A stretch of DNA of 64,000 nt, from contig NW_005434636.1 in assembly GCF_000315625.1 (NCBI RefSeq), forward strand, positions 1 to 64,000, given 5' to 3'. The position numbers were made by a program, and so were the translations under genes. Under the pieces are notes generated by a model, which ran no database searches, had not been told where the DNA came from, and worked only from the letters and a program-made list of their open reading frames with translations. Source of the stretch: Guillardia theta CCMP2712. Its lineage: Eukaryota > Protista > Cryptophyta. Each line of letters opens with the position of its first letter. Positions within the stretch are counted from its first letter, which is position 1. Shown piece by piece: positions 28,275 to 38,299 of the stretch.

Positions 28275-28602
28275 TCCTCCTCTTGACTTCCTCAGCAACA
28301 TCATCCTCCTCTTGACTTCCTCAGCAACGTCATCCAGCCTCCTCTTGACTTCCTTCGCAACATCATCCTCCTCTTGACTTCTCTTTCCATCGCCTTCTCC
28401 TACACCAACAGCTTGCATCTGATATTTGCTCAACCTCCATGATGTCCGCCTCCGGCATATTCCAGCCTCGCGTCGCTCACGTCTTCCCCCGCAAGACCTC
28501 CCAAGGTCCTCATCGACGATGCTCCCACCTCGTCGTCTCTGCCCGTCAAGTCTTCACTCTCCTCCACCTCCGCCAGGTCGACGCTGCCCGACACCTGGTA
28601 AG
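28275..28602 (+). pseudogene. 5' fragment of an RWP-RK gene (upstream 29-bp repeats + exon 1 + donor GTAAG)
   Basis: Close direct match to ~37190-37458; homology stops 5 nt into the intron. Confidence 0.85.
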
Positions 28603-30085
28603 CCGCAGAGATGTGTACAGCCACCACAACAACACGATGCTCCAGCTCATCCGCCAGTACGTGGACACGTACGGAATCATGCAGGACTTTGAGACACGGA
28701 CCTGACCTCCCCTCCTCCCACGGCCTGAGCATCATCCACAGCAAGTAGTTCAGCATGCAGAACGTTGAGCCGCCAAGGGACATCCTGAGGAGGACATCCA
28801 GGGTCGCGGAGCACACCGCATCAATGGCTTCATCAGGGACATCTGAAACAACAAGTAAAGTTCTACGACCAGTCAAGGACAGCTTCTTCACGCTCACCTT
28901 CTCCGAGCTCTTCAAGATGTCTATGCTGGAGGTCTTGCAACAAAACGATGTCCCGGACTTTTGGGACATAAACGCATCAACCTGGCCGTGCCGACGTATG
29001 GATACCGACTCCCTCCGTGTCAGGAATGAGGGTCAGAGAATCCGCCCATTGCCCGACTTCGTCTACCCACCAAACGGGGACTTCCGCTCGAACGTGACGG
29101 TGGTCTATGACTCGATGCAGGCCTAGGCAGTGCTACGAGTCCATGCAGGCCTCCCAGAACATGGGGCTGATCAACATGTCCAAGAACACGATGGCAAGGC
29201 ACATTCTCGGTTCCGTCCTCATGAATTCGGTAACACCCTCAACCTCCCCCGCCACATGACGTTTAGTTGAACGCACACAGCTTCATCCAGACCGTCATGT
29301 CGAGGTCCCTGTACAGCCCAAGGCTCTGCAACGCCATCCTTCAGTCGCTGGACGTCCCCTCAGACATGCAGATCGAGTTCCTGAAGGCACTGGACGGGCT
29401 GGAGAACCCGCTCTGCAGCACCGTGAGGGTGAGCTAAATGTCCTACTCCCACCCAGACGCCTCCATCAAGCAGGGGGGCAACGCGATTCTGGGCAACAAC
29501 AACGCCAAGGCCATCAATGAGACGGTCCTCCAGTACATGAACGAGGTCCTCAACTACGTGGAGAGCTCCTCCAGGGAGATGAAGACCCTGTACCTCCAAG
29601 TCCCGCTGCTGCCGGCCTTCAAGCAGGCCCTCTACACCACCTGGACGAGGCGATGGGGACTGTCCTGCAGAATTCTCGGAACGGCGTGAAGCTGGATGAA
29701 AACACAATCCTGGGCACGGAGTTCAGGTGCGACCCCTTCCCCGTCAACTCCATGGTCAACATGGACGACATCAACAGCGTCATCAACGGCTCGGACATCA
29801 ACAAGTACAGCCTCAAGGCCCCGTTGAACTCGGCCTACGTGAACTCCGTGCTCTCCTCCTTCACCACAGTGGGAACAACGCAAACAACATGAACCATCTC
29901 ACTGAGAACGATGTTGCAAGGATGATCGTTTTGGATGACAGGGTAGACCCCCGAATGGTCCGACTCTACAACCGCATCACGAGACGCAACGAGGACTTGG
30001 TGAACAACATGCGGGTGTGGGACGTCTGCTTCAACGGCTACAACGGGGGCATGGACTCCTCTTACAGGACAATCATGGGTGCTTG
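28603..30085 (+). pseudogene. Decayed intronless foreign-looking (candidate viral) gene fragment
   Basis: ~1.5 kb of coherent protein-like sequence spread over ORFs 28755-29126, 29438-29689, 29653-29892 and the start of 29727, broken by stops and frameshifts; strong C-ending codon bias; Asn/Met-rich; no introns. Confidence 0.55.
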
Positions 30086-30374: not shown

Positions 30375-33300
30375 ATGGCAGCGGAGCTGCAACCACTCGC
30401 GTCCTTCTTCTGCCCCATCAGCCTGGCGCTCATGACGGACCCTGTCTCCTCTTGCGATGGCTTCACCTATGAGAGATCCTCCATCGAGTCTTGGCTCCAG
30501 CTCCGTCTCTCCAGCCCCCTCACTGGCGCCTGCCTCCCCTCCAACCACCTTGTCCCCAACTTCGCTCTCCGCAGCGCCATCCAGGAGTGGCAGGAGCGAC
30601 ACGCGCTGCTCGTCCCCAGACACGACGTCGAAATCGACCAGCAGCCAATCACAGCAGGTTCCTTCAAGAACCTCTACATAGGTCACCTCAGCTTGCGAGG
30701 GCCAGGAGCGGAGCCGGAGAGGATCAAGGTCGCGGTGCTCAAGCTCAGGCAAGGTGATGGCGAGAGAGAAGCCGGGGTGATGCTGAGGCTAAGGCGGCAT
30801 CCTCGGCTTGTACGGTACATGGGGCAGAGCAAGGACGCCGACGGCTGCCGCCTGCTGCTGACCGAGTACGCCGAGCTGGGGTCGCTGAGGGAAGTTCTGG
30901 TGGGGAGGATGGGGAGCCAGGTGACGCGAGGGCACCAGATGGCGATGATGCAGCAGATCGTGCAGGGTATGGAACACCTCGCCGAGCTCCGCGTCGTCCA
31001 TCGGGACCTCGCAGCAAGGCACGTGCTGGTCTTGGGCTTCGACAACGAGGACGTGCGGAGGACGTCGGTGAAGGTGGCGGGCTTCGGGCTGGCAGTAGAG
31101 CTCGTGGACAGCACTGACGCTACGGTAGCGGGGCGAGGGCTGCCGGTGCGCTACATGCCCCCGGAGTCCTTGCAGAGAGGCCGGTGCTCAGAGAAGAGCG
31201 ACGTGTGGGCCTTCGGGGTGACGTGCTGGGAGATCCTGACCTTTGGGAAGACGCCCTACTACAACATGACGGACGATAGTGTGATCCGGTACGTGTGCGG
31301 GGGTGGGAGGCTGGCCCGAGAGGACATAGTCGGAGGATGTCCAGACGAGGTATGGGCCCTGGTAGAGAGCTGCTGGGCGACGAGGGAGGAGGATCGCCCG
31401 ACGTTCGCAGAGCTTGCGGTAGCTCTAGGACGAGCCGGAGCGGAGGGGCGTGAGAGGGCAGCATGGAGATCGTCAGGCAGGAAGCCTGGGCTGCAGGATG
31501 CACGGAGCGGCAGCCAGTCGCTATGCCGGGGCTTATGCCGTATGGCAGAAGCTGCGTGGAGAAGGATCGGAGAGGCAGCGGGCGGAGGGATCGAAGCGGT
31601 GGCGACGAGAGTCAGCAAGCGCAAGTACCGAGAGCTTGCGGGGCTACAAGAGTCAGCATGCGATGCCTTGGAAGGCATGGCGAGTGACGTCCGTAGCTCG
31701 CTGAGCACGGGAGCAAAGAGGCTACGGGTCGGGGCGTCAGCAGCGGTAGAGGCACAAGACGGACGTGGGATGCAGGACCGGGAGCCGGCAAGGGAGGCAT
31801 GGGGGCAGCTGAGAACGACGGGAGCTGAAGATAGCATAGAGACGGTAGTGCAGGACATGACGACGTACGAGGCACTCGCGGAGGTACAGCAGGCTGCGTG
31901 CGAAGCCTTGGTCAGGATGGCTCAGAGCTTTGAAGACTACAAGCTCAAGGCGAGAGAGGCGGGAGCAATCGAGGCCGTCGTCCGCGCGATGACCAGGCAC
32001 CCGGACGACGCAGGGGTACAGCAGGCTGCGCTCTTGGCCCTCAAGCATGCGGTCATCGGAAACGAGGAGAGCCAGCAGCAAGCGCGAGAGGCGGGAGCGA
32101 TCGAGGCCGTCGTCCGTGCGATGACCAGGCACCCGGACGACGCAGGGGTACAGCAGGCTGCGTGCAGGGCTCTGGATCTCATGGTGTGCTTCACGGGTGA
32201 CAGCCAGGGTCCAGCACGAGTCCGGGCGCGAGAGGCGGGAGCGATCGAGGCCGTCATCCGCGCGATGACCAGGCACCCGGACGACGCAGGGGTACAGCAG
32301 GCTGCGTGCGCGACGCTGGAGTACTTGGTAAACTTCATGGCTGACAGCCAGGCGCGGGCGCGAGAGGCGGGAGCGATCGAGGCCGTCGTCCGTGCGATGA
32401 CCAGGCACCCGGACGACGCAGGGGTACAGCAGGCTGCGTGCGGGGCTTTGAGACCTACAGTCAGTCTCATCCATGAGAGCCAGGCGCGAGCGCGAGAGGC
32501 GGGAGCAATCGAGGCCATCGTCCGTGCGATGACCAGGCACCCGGACGACGCAGGGGTACAGCAGGCTGCGTGCTGGGCTTTGAGACATACAGTCAGTCTC
32601 ATCCATGAGAGCCAGGCGCGGGCGCGAGAGGCGGGAGCGATCGAGGCCGTCGTCCGCGCGATGACCAGGCACCCGGACGACGCAGGGGTACAGCAGGCTG
32701 CGTGCGCGACGCTGGAGTACTTGGTAAACTTCATGGCTGACAGCCAGGCGCGGGCGCGAGAGGCGGGAGCGATCCAGGCCGTCTTTAAAGTCATCGATAC
32801 CCACGCGAACAGCACGTTTTCAGTGTTTCGGGCGTACTGGGCCCTCGACTCCATCATGCAGAACTTCCGATATCAGGGCACGGCGAGTGATGCAGCAGCG
32901 CTCGAAGGCATCGTCAGCGCGATGACCAGGCACCAGAGCAACGCGCACATACAGGAGTGTTTATGCAAGTTGCTGTCTAAGATAGCCGAGAACGACGAGC
33001 AGAGCAGGCTCTGGGCTACACAAGCGGGAGCGATCCAGGCCGTCTTTAAAGTCATCGATACCCACGCGAACAGCACGTTTTCAGTGTTTCGGGCGTACTG
33101 GGCCCTCGACTCCATCATGCAGAACTTCCGATATCAGGGCACGGCGAGTGATGCAGCAGCGCTCGAAGGCATCGTCAGCGCGATGACCAGGCACCAGAGC
33201 AACGCGCACATACAGGAGTGTTTATGCAAGTTGCTGTCTAAGATAGCCGAGAACGACGAGCAGAGCAGGCTCTGGGCTACACAAGCGGGAGCGATCCAGG

Positions 33301-33581
33301 CCGTCTTTAAAGTCATCGATACCCACGCGAACAGCACGTTTTCAGTGTTTCGGGCGTACTGGGCCCTCGACTCCATCATGCAGAACTTCCGATATCAGGG
33401 CACGGCGAGTGATGCAGCAGCGCTCGAAGGCATCGTCAGCGCGATGACCAGGCACCAGAGCAACGCGCACATACAGGAGTGTTTATGCAAGTTGCTGTCT
33501 AAGATAGCCGAGAACGACGAGCAGAGCAGGCTCTGGGCTACACAAGCGGGAGCGATCCAGGCCGTCGTCAGCGCAATGTAG
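30375..33581 (+). CDS. Intronless U-box + tyrosine-kinase-like (pseudo)kinase + armadillo-repeat protein; C-terminus probably truncated by a premature stop
   Basis: U-box FFCPISLALMTDPV..DGFTYERSSIESWL..SPLTG..LVPNFALRSAIQEW; kinase HRDLAARHVLV, PVRYMPPES, SDVWAFGVTCWEI; 44-aa ARM repeats AGAIEAVVRAMTRHPDDAGVQQAAC; likely ATG at 30375. Confidence 0.88.
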   Translation: MAAELQPLASFFCPISLALMTDPVSSCDGFTYERSSIESWLQLRLSSPLTGACLPSNHLVPNFALRSAIQEWQERHALLVPRHDVEIDQQPITAGSFKNLYIGHLSLRGPGAEPERIKVAVLKLRQGDGEREAGVMLRLRRHPRLVRYMGQSKDADGCRLLLTEYAELGSLREVLVGRMGSQVTRGHQMAMMQQIVQGMEHLAELRVVHRDLAARHVLVLGFDNEDVRRTSVKVAGFGLAVELVDSTDATVAGRGLPVRYMPPESLQRGRCSEKSDVWAFGVTCWEILTFGKTPYYNMTDDSVIRYVCGGGRLAREDIVGGCPDEVWALVESCWATREEDRPTFAELAVALGRAGAEGRERAAWRSSGRKPGLQDARSGSQSLCRGLCRMAEAAWRRIGEAAGGGIEAVATRVSKRKYRELAGLQESACDALEGMASDVRSSLSTGAKRLRVGASAAVEAQDGRGMQDREPAREAWGQLRTTGAEDSIETVVQDMTTYEALAEVQQAACEALVRMAQSFEDYKLKAREAGAIEAVVRAMTRHPDDAGVQQAALLALKHAVIGNEESQQQAREAGAIEAVVRAMTRHPDDAGVQQAACRALDLMVCFTGDSQGPARVRAREAGAIEAVIRAMTRHPDDAGVQQAACATLEYLVNFMADSQARAREAGAIEAVVRAMTRHPDDAGVQQAACGALRPTVSLIHESQARAREAGAIEAIVRAMTRHPDDAGVQQAACWALRHTVSLIHESQARAREAGAIEAVVRAMTRHPDDAGVQQAACATLEYLVNFMADSQARAREAGAIQAVFKVIDTHANSTFSVFRAYWALDSIMQNFRYQGTASDAAALEGIVSAMTRHQSNAHIQECLCKLLSKIAENDEQSRLWATQAGAIQAVFKVIDTHANSTFSVFRAYWALDSIMQNFRYQGTASDAAALEGIVSAMTRHQSNAHIQECLCKLLSKIAENDEQSRLWATQAGAIQAVFKVIDTHANSTFSVFRAYWALDSIMQNFRYQGTASDAAALEGIVSAMTRHQSNAHIQECLCKLLSKIAENDEQSRLWATQAGAIQAVVSAM
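31950..32753 (+). repeat. Six ARM-coding units (132 bp, one 144 bp): ~81-bp near-invariant scaffold plus variable cassette
   Basis: Unit starts at 31950, 32082, 32226, 32358, 32490 and 32622. Confidence 0.92.
32763..33568 (+). repeat. Three essentially identical 261-bp units (87 aa, two ARM repeats each)
   Basis: Antisense ORF starts 32857, 33118 and 33379 are 261 bp apart; translations are identical. Confidence 0.93.
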
Positions 33582-33821
33582 CATGCGACGAGCTGCACAG
33601 CATCGTCAGCGGCATAGCTGACAGCCAGGTGCGGGTGCGAGAGGCGGGAGCGCTCGATGCCATCGTCAGCGCGATTCAAAGGCATCAGCACAGCACCTGG
33701 TTGCTGGACAGCCTCATGGAGGCACTGAGCAGCCTTGCAAGCAACAACTCGTACAGCATCTAACGCATCCGATCGCTCGGAGGCGATGCCTTGGCTCACA
33801 AGGTCTTTGACGTGCGAAGCT

Positions 33822-34599: not shown

Positions 34600-35400
34600 C
34601 TGCCTACTCCGTGTCCTAGTATGTTACTAAGTTATCGAACCCATCTCCTCCAGCACCGCAAGGCAACTGACGTTTGAAGTAGGCAAACTGACCGTCGGAA
34701 GGTCGGACGGAGGGGTGTCAGGGGCAGGTTGCAGGTCGGATGAACTCAGGCTCCTGTGCCTGTTGCTGTGGCCACTGAAACACCTTCTCAAGGAGACGGA
34801 GATTCGCGACGTCAAAGCACTTGCACTGGGCAGCTGTCAAGGCCGGGGAGATTCCACGTAAGAAGTATTGGAGGGTGGGAACGTGGGTCGTCTTCAAGAG
34901 CTGCTTGAGACCCAACGCAATGGGAAATTGTTCCAACTGGGTCAACTCAGCATTGAAGGCATTCACCTTGGCAGTGATAAACTCTTGCTGAAAGGACTGA
35001 GACCCTATCGGGATACCTCCAAGGATGATCCCCTGGCCTGGGAAGGCAAACTGTTGCAAGCCCTGGTACCGTACCTACTGCAAACTTGAAACATGCTCGT
35101 GGATGGCCAGTTGCTGCCTAGATTGAAGGCACCAGGACGAGGAGAATATCTGCGAATCTCTGGGTCGAATCTCCAATCCGAGCTCTTGTTTCAACGTATC
35201 AACCAGCGATGCAGTGGCTTGTGCGGCAACTGAGAGCTTTCCAACTACGGCCATGTTATCCGCATAGGCCGGGAAGACACAGTCGGGAAAGGTCTCTGCG
35301 ACTTTGACCAGGGAGAGGAAGGTGGTGTGCGCAAAGAGAGCCATCGAAAAGGGGTCCCCCTGAGAAACCCCCGTAGTGGCCGAAAACGCCAGAGTCTCTT
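34600..35400 (-). mobile_element. Truncated, frameshifted non-LTR retrotransposon reverse transcriptase (CRE/SLACS-like)
   Basis: TGVSQGDPFSMALF, AYADN, LGLEIRPRDS, GIILGGIPIGSQSF, LQYFLRGISP..FD, QLPCGAGGDG; frame break near 35070; no endonuclease or element ends visible. Confidence 0.85.
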
Positions 35401-35864
35401 ACCGGCCTGGCCGTAACATTGATGAACCTACGGAAGGACTCCTTGTGAAATAGACTCAGAGATCTCAGAGACGGTTTACCCGGTACGCCCGGCTCGCCAC
35501 CGCCGGCCCGGCCACTGAGTACGCGACCCGGCCCCGGGGCCTGGAGTCAGGTCACAGTTAGCCTCGGCCCACGGTCACTGGAAAGTTCGGAGCGAGCGCG
35601 TCCCGGCATGGTCGATGAGGTTCTGGCGGGCTGAGCCTGAGCCTAGGCCGGTGTCAGGCATGGACGCCAGTCTGACAGGGGCCGGGGGGCTCGACGTCAA
35701 CATGTAGCATGATGATGGATTAGCTTGATTGTGATCGGTTTATTACTCGCTATCTCATCCAGCATCTCCTCGCCCCCTCTTCCTCTATGTCTCGTCATCG
35801 TCATGGTCCAGCCCAGCCCAGCCCTCGTCCTCTCTTCCCTTTCCCCGCCAGCAGCCTTCTCTTC

Positions 35865-36400
35865 CTATCCCCGATGAGATAACCCCTGGTACAGGCCTGC
35901 CTCGACGTGCGCCATGGCCTCCTCCAACAGCGACGGAGCCTCGTACCTGCTCTCCTGTACGAGCGGCCGGGTCTTATCCCCGCAGGCTCCCTCCTCCTGG
36001 CTCGCGTCCTCCAGGACTTCTGGCAGCTTGCTCGACGAGGCGCGTGCGACAGAGCGCAGCGAGCACAGCTCGGGGTCATCCAGCAGCCCCTCCTCCTCCA
36101 GAAGCGACAGCCTCTCCCTCTCCGAGTGCGGCCACCTGCACACGCCCACCTTCCTGCACACGGTCTTGAAGGCCGTCAGCGACAGTCCCTGCGCCCCCTC
36201 CCATCAGTGCTGGCTGAGTGAGAGGCGCAGCGCACGCGTCTTACCAGGTGTTGGGCAGCGTCGACCTGGCGGAGGTGGAGGAGAGTGAAGACTTGACGGG
36301 CAGAGACGACGAGGTGGGAGCATCGTCGATGAGGACCTTGGGAGGTCTTGCGGGGGAAGACGTGAGCGACGCGAGGCTGGAAGATGCCGGAGGCGGACAT
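35865..36400 (-). CDS. RWP-RK domain transcription factor, intact copy (2 exons, ~159 aa)
   Basis: Exon 36400-36245 (VFPRKT..VFTLLHLRQVDAAQHL), 56-nt GT-AG intron, exon 36188-35865 (GLSLTAFKTVCRKVGVCRWPHSER). Confidence 0.85.
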
Positions 36401-37297
36401 GGAGGTTGAGCAAATATCAGATGCAATCTGTTGGTGTAGAAGAAGGCGATGTAAAGAGAAGTCAAGAGGAGGATGATGTTGCTGAGGAAGTCAAGAGAAG
36501 GATGATGTTGCTGAGGAAGTTGATAAGAGGAGGATGATGTTGCTGATGAAGTGTTGGCTTGATCAAGTTCGTGCCGCTGTGCTACCGAACATGGCGGGGC
36601 GGGAGGGGACAAGTGAAGCACGTTATCTGTACCCCGTCCGATCGCATCTCGTCTCCCCGGATACCTAAGCAGGTCTCACTGCGCATCGTTTCGCATCTCT
36701 TCAAGTAGGGTCAAATGAGAAGGAGTCTTTTGGGAGGGGATGGCGGTCAGGCGGGGACAAATTGTTCGAAGCGACGTGAATGTGAGGTTCTAACGAACTT
36801 GCCCCTGTGATTCAATCTAACGAACTTGCCCCTGTGATTCAACCTCACATTCACGTCGCTTCGAACTTGCCCCTGTGATTCAATCTAACGAACTTGCCCC
36901 TGTGATTCAACCTCACATTCACGTCGCTTCGAACAATTTGTCCCCGCCTGACCGCCATCCCCTCCCAAAAGACTCCTTCTCATTTGACCCTACTTGAAGA
37001 GATGCGAAACGATGCGCAGTGAGACCTGCTTAGGTATCCGGGGAGACGAGATGCGATCGGACGGGGTACAGATAACGTGCTTCACTTGTCCCCTCCCGCC
37101 CCGCCATGTTCGGTAGCACAGCGGCACGAACTTGATCAAGCCAACACTTCATCAGCAACATCATCCTCCTCTTATCAACTTCCTCAGCAACATCATCCTT
37201 CTCTTGACTTCCTCAGCAACATCATCCTCCTCTTGACTTCTCTTTACATCGCCTTCTTCTACACCAACAGATTGCATCTGATATTTGCTCAACCTCC

Positions 37298-37896
37298 ATG
37301 TCCGCCTCCGGCATCTTCCAGCCTCGCGTCGCTCACGTCTTCCCCCGCAAGACCTCCCAAGGTCCTCATCGACGATGCTCCCACCTCGTCGTCTCTGCCC
37401 GTCAAGTCTTCACTCTCCTCCACCTCCGCCAGGTCGACGCTGCCCAACACCTGGTAAGACGCGTGCGCTGCGCCTCTCACTCAGCCAGCACTGATGGGAG
37501 GGGGCGCAGGGACTGTCGCTGACGGCCTTCAAGACCGTGTGCAGGAAGGTGGGCGTGTGCAGGTGGCCGCACTCGGAGAGGGAGAGGCTGTCGCTTCTGG
37601 AGGAGGAGGGGCTGCTGGATGACCCCGAGCTGTGCTCGCTGCGCTCTGTCGCACGCGCCTCGTCGAGCAAGCTGCCAGAAGTCCTGGAGGACGCGAGCCA
37701 GGAGGAGGAGCCTGCGGGGATAAGACCCGGCCGCTCGTACAGGAGAGCAGGTACGAGGCTCCGTCGCTGTTGGAGGAGGCCATGGCGCACGTCGAGGCAG
37801 GCCTGTACCAGGGGTTATCTCATCGGGGATAGGAAGAGAAGGCTGCTGGCGGGGAAAGGGAAGAGAGGACGAGGGCTGGGCTGGGCTGGACCATGA
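37298..37896 (+). CDS. RWP-RK transcription factor, mirror copy with a 1-bp deletion that changes the C-terminus
   Basis: Exon 37298-37453, intron 37454-37509, exon from 37510; GAGGAGGAGCC versus GAGGAGGGAGCC near 37708 shifts the frame after the RWP-RK domain. Confidence 0.8.
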
Positions 37897-38299
37897 CGAT
37901 GACGAGACATAGAGGAAGAGGGGGCGAGGAGATGCTGGATGAGATAGCGAGTAATAAACCGATCACAATCAAGCTAATCCATCATCATGCTACATCTTGA
38001 CGTCGAGCCCCCCGGCCCCTGTCAGCCTGGCGTCTACCGTACCCTCCAGTCTCCTGCTATGCCCTGATCTCTCCTCCCGTCCCTTCCTTTCTCTATCGTC
38101 GCCATCAGGAGAAGCCTTCTGTCTCCGTGCCCAGCACCTTGACGCCCGTCCATTTCTCTCGTCTGCTCGGATGTCAGCTGCGCGAGGGCAGGCATGGCAG
38201 GCGACCTGAAGGAGGGAGCAGAAGCCTCATGCTGCTGCACCACTCGACTAGGAACGCGATGCCGCGCCTCATGCTCAGGAGGAACTTGCTCGCGCTGAC

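Follow-up and report, generated by a model that had tools for sequence, protein, structure and literature searches.

The 64,000 nucleotides (nt) of Guillardia theta CCMP2712 analysed here (contig NW_005434636.1, positions 1 to 64,000; hereafter the window) contain an intron-less gene for a U-box and protein kinase-like protein whose long ARM solenoid carries, at its centre, a tandem array of six ARM repeats (31950..32753, + strand; Tandem Repeats Finder and unit alignment). Every unit of this array combines an 84-nt homogenised scaffold with a cassette that differs strongly between most units. The reading that we prefer, and to which we give a probability of about 60%, is that the array belongs to an ARM solenoid with which a cryptophyte U-box E3 carrying a kinase-like domain would bind its substrate, and that the six central repeats of this solenoid have been under partial concerted evolution, in which the scaffolds were overwritten repeatedly and the cores of the cassettes were spared.

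Layout and nucleotide pattern of the array

Tandem Repeats Finder reports a period of 132 bp and 6.2 copies at 31949-32783. Unit alignment places the unit starts at 31950, 32082, 32226, 32358, 32490 and 32622, with lengths of 132, 144, 132, 132, 132 and 132 nt, the greater length of unit 2 being accounted for by a 12-nt insertion at 32208-32219. The scaffold, defined as the first 84 nt of a unit, is 95-100% identical among units 2-6 and 94-95% identical between unit 1 and the rest; nt 37-81 are without variation in all six units (nt 37-84 in units 2-6), and five polymorphic sites fall in nt 1-36, at codons 2, 6, 10, 11 and 12. The variable core that follows comprises 36 nt (12 codons) and has an identity of 42-64% across cassette types. 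Variable sites amount to 28/36 in the core vs 7/84 in the scaffold (Fisher p=6e-14), a contrast that is real and lies far beyond chance. The final 12-15 nt of each unit, encoding [D/E]SQAR, are conserved again, indicating that the homogenised block really measures ~96 nt and spans the unit boundary. Outside the array, neither the scaffold nor any of the cores recurs in the 64-kb window.

On the + strand, the variable cores are located at 32034..32069 in unit 1 (LALKHAVIGNEE), 32166..32219 in unit 2 (RALDLMVCFTGD, then SQ and the 12-nt insertion), 32310..32345 in unit 3 (ATLEYLVNFMAD), 32442..32477 in unit 4 (GALRPTVSLIHE), 32574..32609 in unit 5 (WALRHTVSLIHE) and 32706..32741 in unit 6, whose core is the same as that of unit 3 (ATLEYLVNFMAD). 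Units 3 and 6 differ by 1 nt in 132 (codon 11, ATC/GTC). Between units 4 and 5, the cassettes differ by GGG/TGG and CCT/CAT in the core, both non-synonymous, and by a synonymous CGA/CGG in the last cassette codon, and the scaffolds by GCG/GCA and GTC/ATC. The two core differences, at 32442 and 32455, are both G:C to T:A transversions and lie 13 nt apart. The initial annotation, which had been made from the letters of the window, quoted the six units and their translations correctly, and its statements that the non-adjacent cassettes 3 and 6 are identical and that cassettes 4 and 5 are separated by two non-synonymous changes hold for the cores, with the single substitution between units 3 and 6 and the synonymous CGA/CGG as additions. 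The near-invariant block of ~81 bp that it described is near-invariant indeed, but is longer than stated, at 84 nt or, with the wrapped [D/E]SQAR, ~96 nt.

Assembly is difficult where identical blocks of 84-96 nt adjoin a perfect 800-bp array, and errors of assembly or polishing in the repeat might have exaggerated the homogeneity of the scaffold or put the units in the wrong order. Short-read graphs mix units 4 and 5, as seen in a contig (X1) that bears the unit-5 letters at 32442 and 32455 on unit 4. We rejected this apparent variant as a strain difference, bubble-popping in a low-coverage graph being its best explanation, and we likewise rejected read depth as a measure of copy number, as summed unitig depths do not equal copy numbers. 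Against an assembly artefact, contigs of three independent runs agree without differences with the window over the cores of units 4 and 6 and over the junction of units 4 and 5, the single-nucleotide polymorphisms (SNPs) of the scaffold are preserved, and the same pattern recurs in unrelated metagenome contigs, all of which leaves such errors a very improbable source of the mosaic.

Age of scaffolds and cores

Proportions of synonymous (pS) and non-synonymous (pN) differences were calculated pairwise by the Nei-Gojobori method. Scaffold pS is 0-0.14 vs 0.56-0.71, that is saturated, across cassette types, and even the Leu and Val conserved among the cassettes are encoded by different synonymous codons from one cassette type to the next. 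Saturated pS in the cassettes together with near-zero pS in the scaffolds indicates that the cores are much older than the scaffolds, and a pattern that involves saturated synonymous sites is not explicable by positive selection at the amino acid level. The difference in age is most simply put down to gene conversion or unequal crossover that repeatedly overwrote the scaffold and spared the cores. Cassette pN (0.34-0.50) is below pS, with pN/pS of about 0.55-0.7, and the pairwise pN/pS of the array cassettes gives no signal of positive selection. Units 4 and 5 differ over 132 nt by three non-synonymous and two synonymous changes (two and one in the cassette alone), which is compatible with neutrality. 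The suggestion of diversifying selection made in the initial annotation is not borne out by these values.

We propose that the repeats are old, as suggested by helix-3 and loop cores saturated at synonymous sites, and that repeated gene conversion and unequal crossover would have overwritten the end of helix 1 (H1), helix 2 (H2) and the first half of helix 3 (H3), leaving an 84-96-nt block that is almost identical in DNA. Conversion tracts may have halted at the diverged core, either by heteroduplex rejection or by selection against homogenised cores, and two recent whole-unit events would complete the present array, with unit 6 copied from unit 3 and unit 5 from unit 4.

The scaffold SNPs allow duplication of units to be told from exchange of cassettes. 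Codon 12 is CGT in the second, fourth and fifth units and CGC in the others and so tracks the cassette type (A = 3/6, B = 4/5), which points to duplication or conversion of whole units and not to cassette swapping. All four gametes are present at codons 6 and 12, a weak sign of recombination or conversion inside the scaffold. The order A-B-B'-A is out of reach of a single tandem duplication; it takes either two or three unequal exchanges or one conversion between units that are not adjacent. Units have therefore been rearranged by recombination at the homogenised scaffold in a weak sense only: where recombination had been thought to reshuffle specificity modules, exchange between units is upheld by the pairs 3/6 and 4/5 and the four gametes, but swapping of cassettes is not supported, in view of the codon-12 SNP. 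We found neither donor cassettes nor a template repeat for dedicated or programmed swapping in the 64-kb window, and the window thus lacks the donors or template by which a programmed cassette assembly or mutagenic system, of the type of lamprey variable lymphocyte receptors (VLRs) or diversity-generating retroelements, would be recognised.

Fold and ligand-contact face

The structure was taken from an AlphaFold model built on a 49-sequence alignment, and a single-sequence model (predicted local distance difference test, pLDDT, 57.7) was set aside. The model used has a pLDDT of 94.4 and a predicted template modelling score (pTM) of 0.92, with three helices per unit, and is confident across the array. 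Foldseek aligned it with a template modelling (TM) score of 0.78 to the designed ARM protein 4rv1 and of 0.72-0.75 to importin-alpha. By both its profile match and the right-handed H1-H2-H3 superhelix of the model, the array is predicted to be an ARM solenoid.

In the model, H1 is made of the last residues of the preceding cassette plus ARE, H2 of AIEAVVRAMTR, and H3 of AGVQQAAC plus the first seven core residues, with a three-residue loop next. H3 is accordingly split between the two parts of a unit: its first half is encoded by the scaffold, together with H2 and the terminal part of H1, and its second half by the cassette, together with the loop and the beginning of the H1 that comes next, in agreement with the earlier proposal that the cassettes begin in helix H3. 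In the HMMER alignment, QAACWALRHTVSLIHES pairs with QEALWALSNIASGGNEQ of designed ARM proteins, whereby core positions 2 and 6 are the Trp and Asn positions of the WxxxN motif and the expected contact positions are covered by the cassette. This motif lines the groove for the ligand, the nuclear localization signal, in ARM proteins of the importin-alpha type. Units 1-6 have L, R, A, G, W and A at the Trp position and H, L, Y, P, H and Y at the Asn position, with the Gly/Pro pair of unit 4 and the core of unit 5 parting from one another at these two positions only. With the Asn absent from all six units, importin-like binding of a peptide backbone is unlikely, judging by the aligned residues. 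Because the cores hold the canonical ARM ligand-contact positions, different cores would most likely offer different binding pockets to a substrate ubiquitinated through the U-box.

Variability of the core is not confined to the groove. It extends to a buried position (A/M/L/T/T/L in units 1-6) and all along the loop, burial and exposure being assigned from the alignment to designed ARM proteins. Variation at buried and loop positions is the look of anciently diverged ARM repeats.

Gene architecture and state of this copy

The array is part of an intron-less open reading frame (ORF) of 1068 codons plus TAG (30375..33581, + strand; ORF list and Pfam), which encodes a U-box, a kinase-like domain and the ARM solenoid, and whose Met at 30375 aligns with the N-terminus of the relatives P0101 and P0104. 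The U-box (residues 11-76; 30405..30602, + strand) matches PF04564 with E=1.6e-16 and 60.7 bits vs a cut-off of 21.4, over profile positions 5-71 of 73, which places the protein by its domain content among U-box E3 ubiquitin ligases, with a predicted ligase activity. A protein kinase fold of the Tyr-kinase-like type follows (residues 90-349; 30642..31421, + strand; PF07714, E=1.8e-55). From ~residue 485 to its end, the protein has an ARM region of LRRK2-like type in Pfam, with 91.3 bits for PF00514 (cut-off 20.6), 96.8 bits for PF23744 ARM_LRRK2 (cut-off 26.2) and, just under the cut-off of 33, 32.4 bits for PF25598 ARM_PUB. Upstream of the array, this region consists of degenerate ARM repeats of unique sequence (31581..31949, + strand; delimited by sequence, Pfam ARM_LRRK2 and model helices), the last of which overlaps with the scaffold in no more than the 18-nt GTACAGCAGGCTGCGTGC. 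Pfam gave no match to NACHT, NB-ARC or another NOD or switch domain in the 1068-residue protein. On the minus strand, two ORFs over the array (355 and 306 amino acids) were dismissed as by-products of a GC-rich in-frame repeat.

Directly downstream lies a second tandem array of 3.1 copies of 261 bp, equivalent to two ARM repeats, at 100% identity (32763-33566, + strand; Tandem Repeats Finder score 1608). Its perfection suggests that slippage or crossover events have been very recent at this locus; being without any variation, it has either been triplicated very recently or reflects a problem of the assembly.

The catalytic loop of the kinase-like domain reads HRDLAARH (30999-31022) where HRDLAARN is expected, and GFG stands in place of DFG (31077-31088), while the VAIK Lys is present as VAVLK. 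Among relatives, the loop Asn is found in 10/11 and DFG in 5/11 (wherever the motif was matched), with the 85%-identical P0100 as the sole exception. The loss of these two Mg-binding residues makes the kinase output that the initial annotation had foreseen unlikely, and the domain is probably catalytically dead. Three-frame translation further showed that the ORF stops prematurely at the TAG (33579-33581), beyond which the last 1.5 ARM repeats can still be recognised, out of frame (+2), as far as a TAA at 33760-33762 (33579..33762, + strand). The frame reaches the TAG after AGAIQAVVSAM, the +2 remnant reads NVACDELHSIVSGIADSQVRVREAGALDAIVSAIQRHQH..., and ~10 codons, of a length not divisible by 3, are gone between AVVSAM and NVACDEL. 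Unless the assembly is in error here, a frameshifting deletion appears to have removed the C-terminal repeats. In a single raw-read RNA run, 1 read fell on 2.5 kb among 19.8 million records. The frameshift and the near absence of RNA reads run counter to the active sensor that had been envisaged, and together with the dead kinase they suggest that this gene copy is probably impaired or decaying.

The N-terminal half of the gene retains a record of constraint. Relative to L001, the contig of P0100 and a relative of 90% nucleotide identity, the ratio of non-synonymous to synonymous substitution rates (dN/dS) is 0.40 overall and rises from 0.32 in the kinase through 0.41 in the U-box to 0.63 in the linker, at a dS of 0.18, suggestive of purifying selection that was moderate and not absent; the overall value also counts among the signs of impairment. 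These values bear on the possibility that the gene has recently become a pseudogene, in surroundings rich in rearrangements, and that slippage and conversion among GC-rich repeats produced the pattern of the array neutrally, with no function at present. In keeping with this are the frameshifting deletion with its premature stop, the loss of two catalytic kinase residues, the solitary RNA read, the Gly and Pro within helix 3 of unit 4, the perfect 261-bp triplication, the linker dN/dS, and the 93-99.7% identical duplicated segments and palindrome that flank the locus. However, a 3.2-kb ORF persists without internal stop, the dN/dS of 0.32-0.41 in kinase and U-box speaks for past purifying selection, the kinase substitutions also occur in P0100 and are thus older than the present copy and were tolerated, and the AlphaFold model is confident all through the array. 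On balance, we consider such a young pseudogene with a functionless array improbable, although not as improbable as an assembly artefact.

Relatives and contigs from public runs

The protein collection that was searched contained no exact copy of any of five window ORFs looked up in it. The named relatives among the matches to the ARM region and to the domain module were cryptophytes, Rhodomonas salina and Hanusia phi. The U-box-kinase module is present in Rhodomonas salina P0104 and in metagenomic P0101-P0110, with ARM, ankyrin or ubiquitin-like domains as partners, and the protein search also returned ARM arrays of similar type fused to caspase, lipase, BTB, F-box/ankyrin or MYND domains. 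In the contigs L002-L006 from one JGI metagenome, a scaffold GGIEAVVRAMxAHxSSxGVQ is nearly invariant, entropy peaks at positions 21/22, 25, 28 and 32 follow a helical periodicity on a single H3 face, plus the loop, and sub-cassettes recur in non-adjacent units. Scaffold vs cassette pS is 0.24 vs 0.38 in L003, where cassette pN/pS reaches 0.89, and 0.25 vs 0.60 in L023, which encodes the U-box-kinase-ARM protein P0101. The partition into scaffold and variable part that had been noted at this locus is thus recurrent in relatives, in association with varied enzyme domains, and the equal partition there suggests that the mosaic is a family trait and not a peculiarity of the locus.

A close paralogue of the array was not recovered. 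The best match was 42% identical in a word-index protein search with the ARM region as query, a three-unit query found at best 59% identity over about half of its length, and a degenerate-DNA scan of the JGI metagenomes for AMTRHPDDAGVQQAA gave 0 matches; nothing above 60% identity to the array thus came out of these searches. In L001, similarity to the window ends at 31963, 13 nt into unit 1, and unrelated sequence follows; this is probably a break of the metagenome assembly at the repeat and is uninformative for comparison of the array. Beyond the break, L001:2859-3922 has a helicase-like ORF on the opposite strand. Two contigs from different marine metagenomes, L005:1410-3305 and L009:1-1758, share one ARM protein at 99.5% identity and differ in length by exactly one 138-nt repeat unit; the length junction lies inside the conserved scaffold and represents repeat-number polymorphism or assembly collapse.

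Contigs from public runs (X4, X3) have flanks identical to the window and different cores at 31926-31950 and at 32583, with NGEADKVK for SFEDYKLK before unit 1 and CWAL then KYTMQYFRY as variants. Against the window, they show up as a joint of 31926 and 32621 with 22 other letters between and as a loose end at 32583. The occurrence of other cores on identical flanks indicates that the organism has at least one more allele or paralogue.

A diversifying recognition repertoire as an alternative

Alternatively, the gene may be functional and part of a recognition repertoire that diversifies in a manner analogous to the high-internal-conservation repeats of fungal NLRs, with the scaffold as a recombination substrate within and between paralogues, selection that keeps and reshuffles the helix-3 cores so that target specificity changes, and the U-box as output. 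Such a role would fit the position of the variable cores over the ligand-contact face, the location of the unit 4/5 differences at the Trp and Asn positions, the non-adjacency of identical units, the alternative cores on identical flanks in public runs, the helically periodic hypervariability of relatives with the L003 cassette pN/pS of 0.89, the fusion of relatives to caspase, lipase, BTB, F-box and MYND domains and of the U-box-kinase module to ankyrin and ubiquitin domains, and the possible one-unit length polymorphism between L005 and L009. It is opposed by the missing signal of positive selection in the array, by amino acid identities of 68-80% across cassette types, which are under the 85% of fungal high-internal-conservation repeats, by the Pfam result for NOD and switch domains, by the dead kinase, 3' frameshift and near absence of transcripts, by a scaffold SNP pattern that fits whole-unit duplication, and by the failure to find a second scaffold copy in the 64-kb window, the JGI metagenome scan or the protein searches. 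We regard this alternative as rather unlikely, although the strongest competitor to concerted evolution of a substrate-binding solenoid, and an immune-receptor reading has no direct support from the present locus.

A related and slightly less likely scenario is set at the level of the family. Cryptophytes would have an NLR-independent recognition repertoire of ARM arrays with the scaffold as recombination handle, exchangeable helix-3 cores and interchangeable outputs, and the locus would be a small, recently inactivated member of it. The outputs may include U-box, kinase, caspase, lipase and ADP-ribosyltransferase, and the locus may record A-B-B'-A shuffling and a two-residue Trp/Asn specificity switch.

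Several observations also weigh against our preferred reading of partial concerted evolution in an impaired substrate-binding gene. The helix-3 differences between units 4 and 5 hit exactly the Trp and Asn positions, which hints at a change in specificity; calculated post hoc, the probability of striking this pair of codons is 1/946, and that of striking any pair among the four groove codons 6/946. The boundary of homogenisation is common to all units and falls at the start of the ligand-contact positions, as would also be expected if selection keeps the cores diverse. Exchange between loci or alleles is possible in view of the other cores on identical flanks. With regard to the condition of the gene, the 1068-codon ORF is still open and expression was gauged from one raw-read run.

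Comparison with known systems

The nearest analogue of the array among known systems is the repeat domain of fungal NLRs with high internal conservation. High-internal-conservation repeats of fungal NLRs are defined by >85% amino acid identity over >=100 residues (Dyrka et al., 2014, PMC4986451). Like the array, the WD40/ANK/TPR repeats of fungal NLRs (Podospora nwd/het-e/het-d; PMC4986451) form solenoids that are near-identical in DNA save at binding-surface positions, undergo concerted evolution via inter-repeat recombination and are fused to varied enzymatic or effector domains. The array differs from them in its ARM fold and in the absence of NACHT and NB-ARC, and its variation is a contiguous block of 12 codons that includes buried and loop positions, whereas fungal repeats vary at 3-4 isolated codons. 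The amino acid identity between its units is 68-80%, with only the pairs 3/6 (98%) and 4/5 (93%) above the fungal 85%, and neither positive selection nor repeat-number polymorphism is shown at the locus. By this comparison the array falls outside the fungal high-internal-conservation NLR class, though it appears partly similar in its workings, with recombination on a homogenised scaffold and variation at the binding face.

In its N-terminal U-box and C-terminal ARM region, the latter being the domain for binding of substrates or partners, the gene resembles the plant PUB-ARM ligases (PUB12/13, ARC1). The ARM domain of plant PUB proteins binds kinase domains. In the present gene, unlike in the plant ligases, a kinase-like domain is located in cis between U-box and ARM, the ARM region is LRRK2-like (PF23744), and the repeats are homogenised in DNA, which those of plant PUB proteins are not. 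Importin-alpha and designed ARM proteins (PDB 4rv1, 5mfl, 5mfd) share with the array the three-helix repeat and the superhelix (TM 0.72-0.78), and their helix-3 positions can be aligned with it residue by residue, but they keep in each repeat a Trp/Asn ladder for an extended peptide, which the array does not.

Our literature search brought up no publication that deals with ARM arrays in cryptophytes or with ARM repeats evolving in concert. If the family-level scenario were true, ARM would join WD40, ANK, TPR and LRR as rapidly diversifying recognition folds, and recognition of this kind would occur in cryptophytes, a lineage whose innate immunity is essentially unknown. Taken for itself, this is a single gene of modest importance, probably impaired and with no direct evidence of selection or immune function. 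Its locus is nonetheless small and legible, with two coalescence times in one 132-bp unit and a clean case of conversion-limited mosaic concerted evolution in a coding repeat.

Surroundings of the gene

A segment of 320 bp brackets the gene in 93%-identical copies at 28286-28606, 36236-36552 and 37146-37462. It is also contained in a 1.1-kb inverted repeat of 99.7% identity, which forms a palindrome (35663-36789 / 36909-38034). The region around the gene is prone to rearrangement. Neighbouring ORFs, including a possible reverse-transcriptase remnant, had zero Pfam matches. In this remnant, a group of short ORFs at 34718-35344 (- strand), an AYADN motif resembles the YADD box of reverse transcriptases, and on the strength of this motif the ORFs may be what is left of a retrotransposon.

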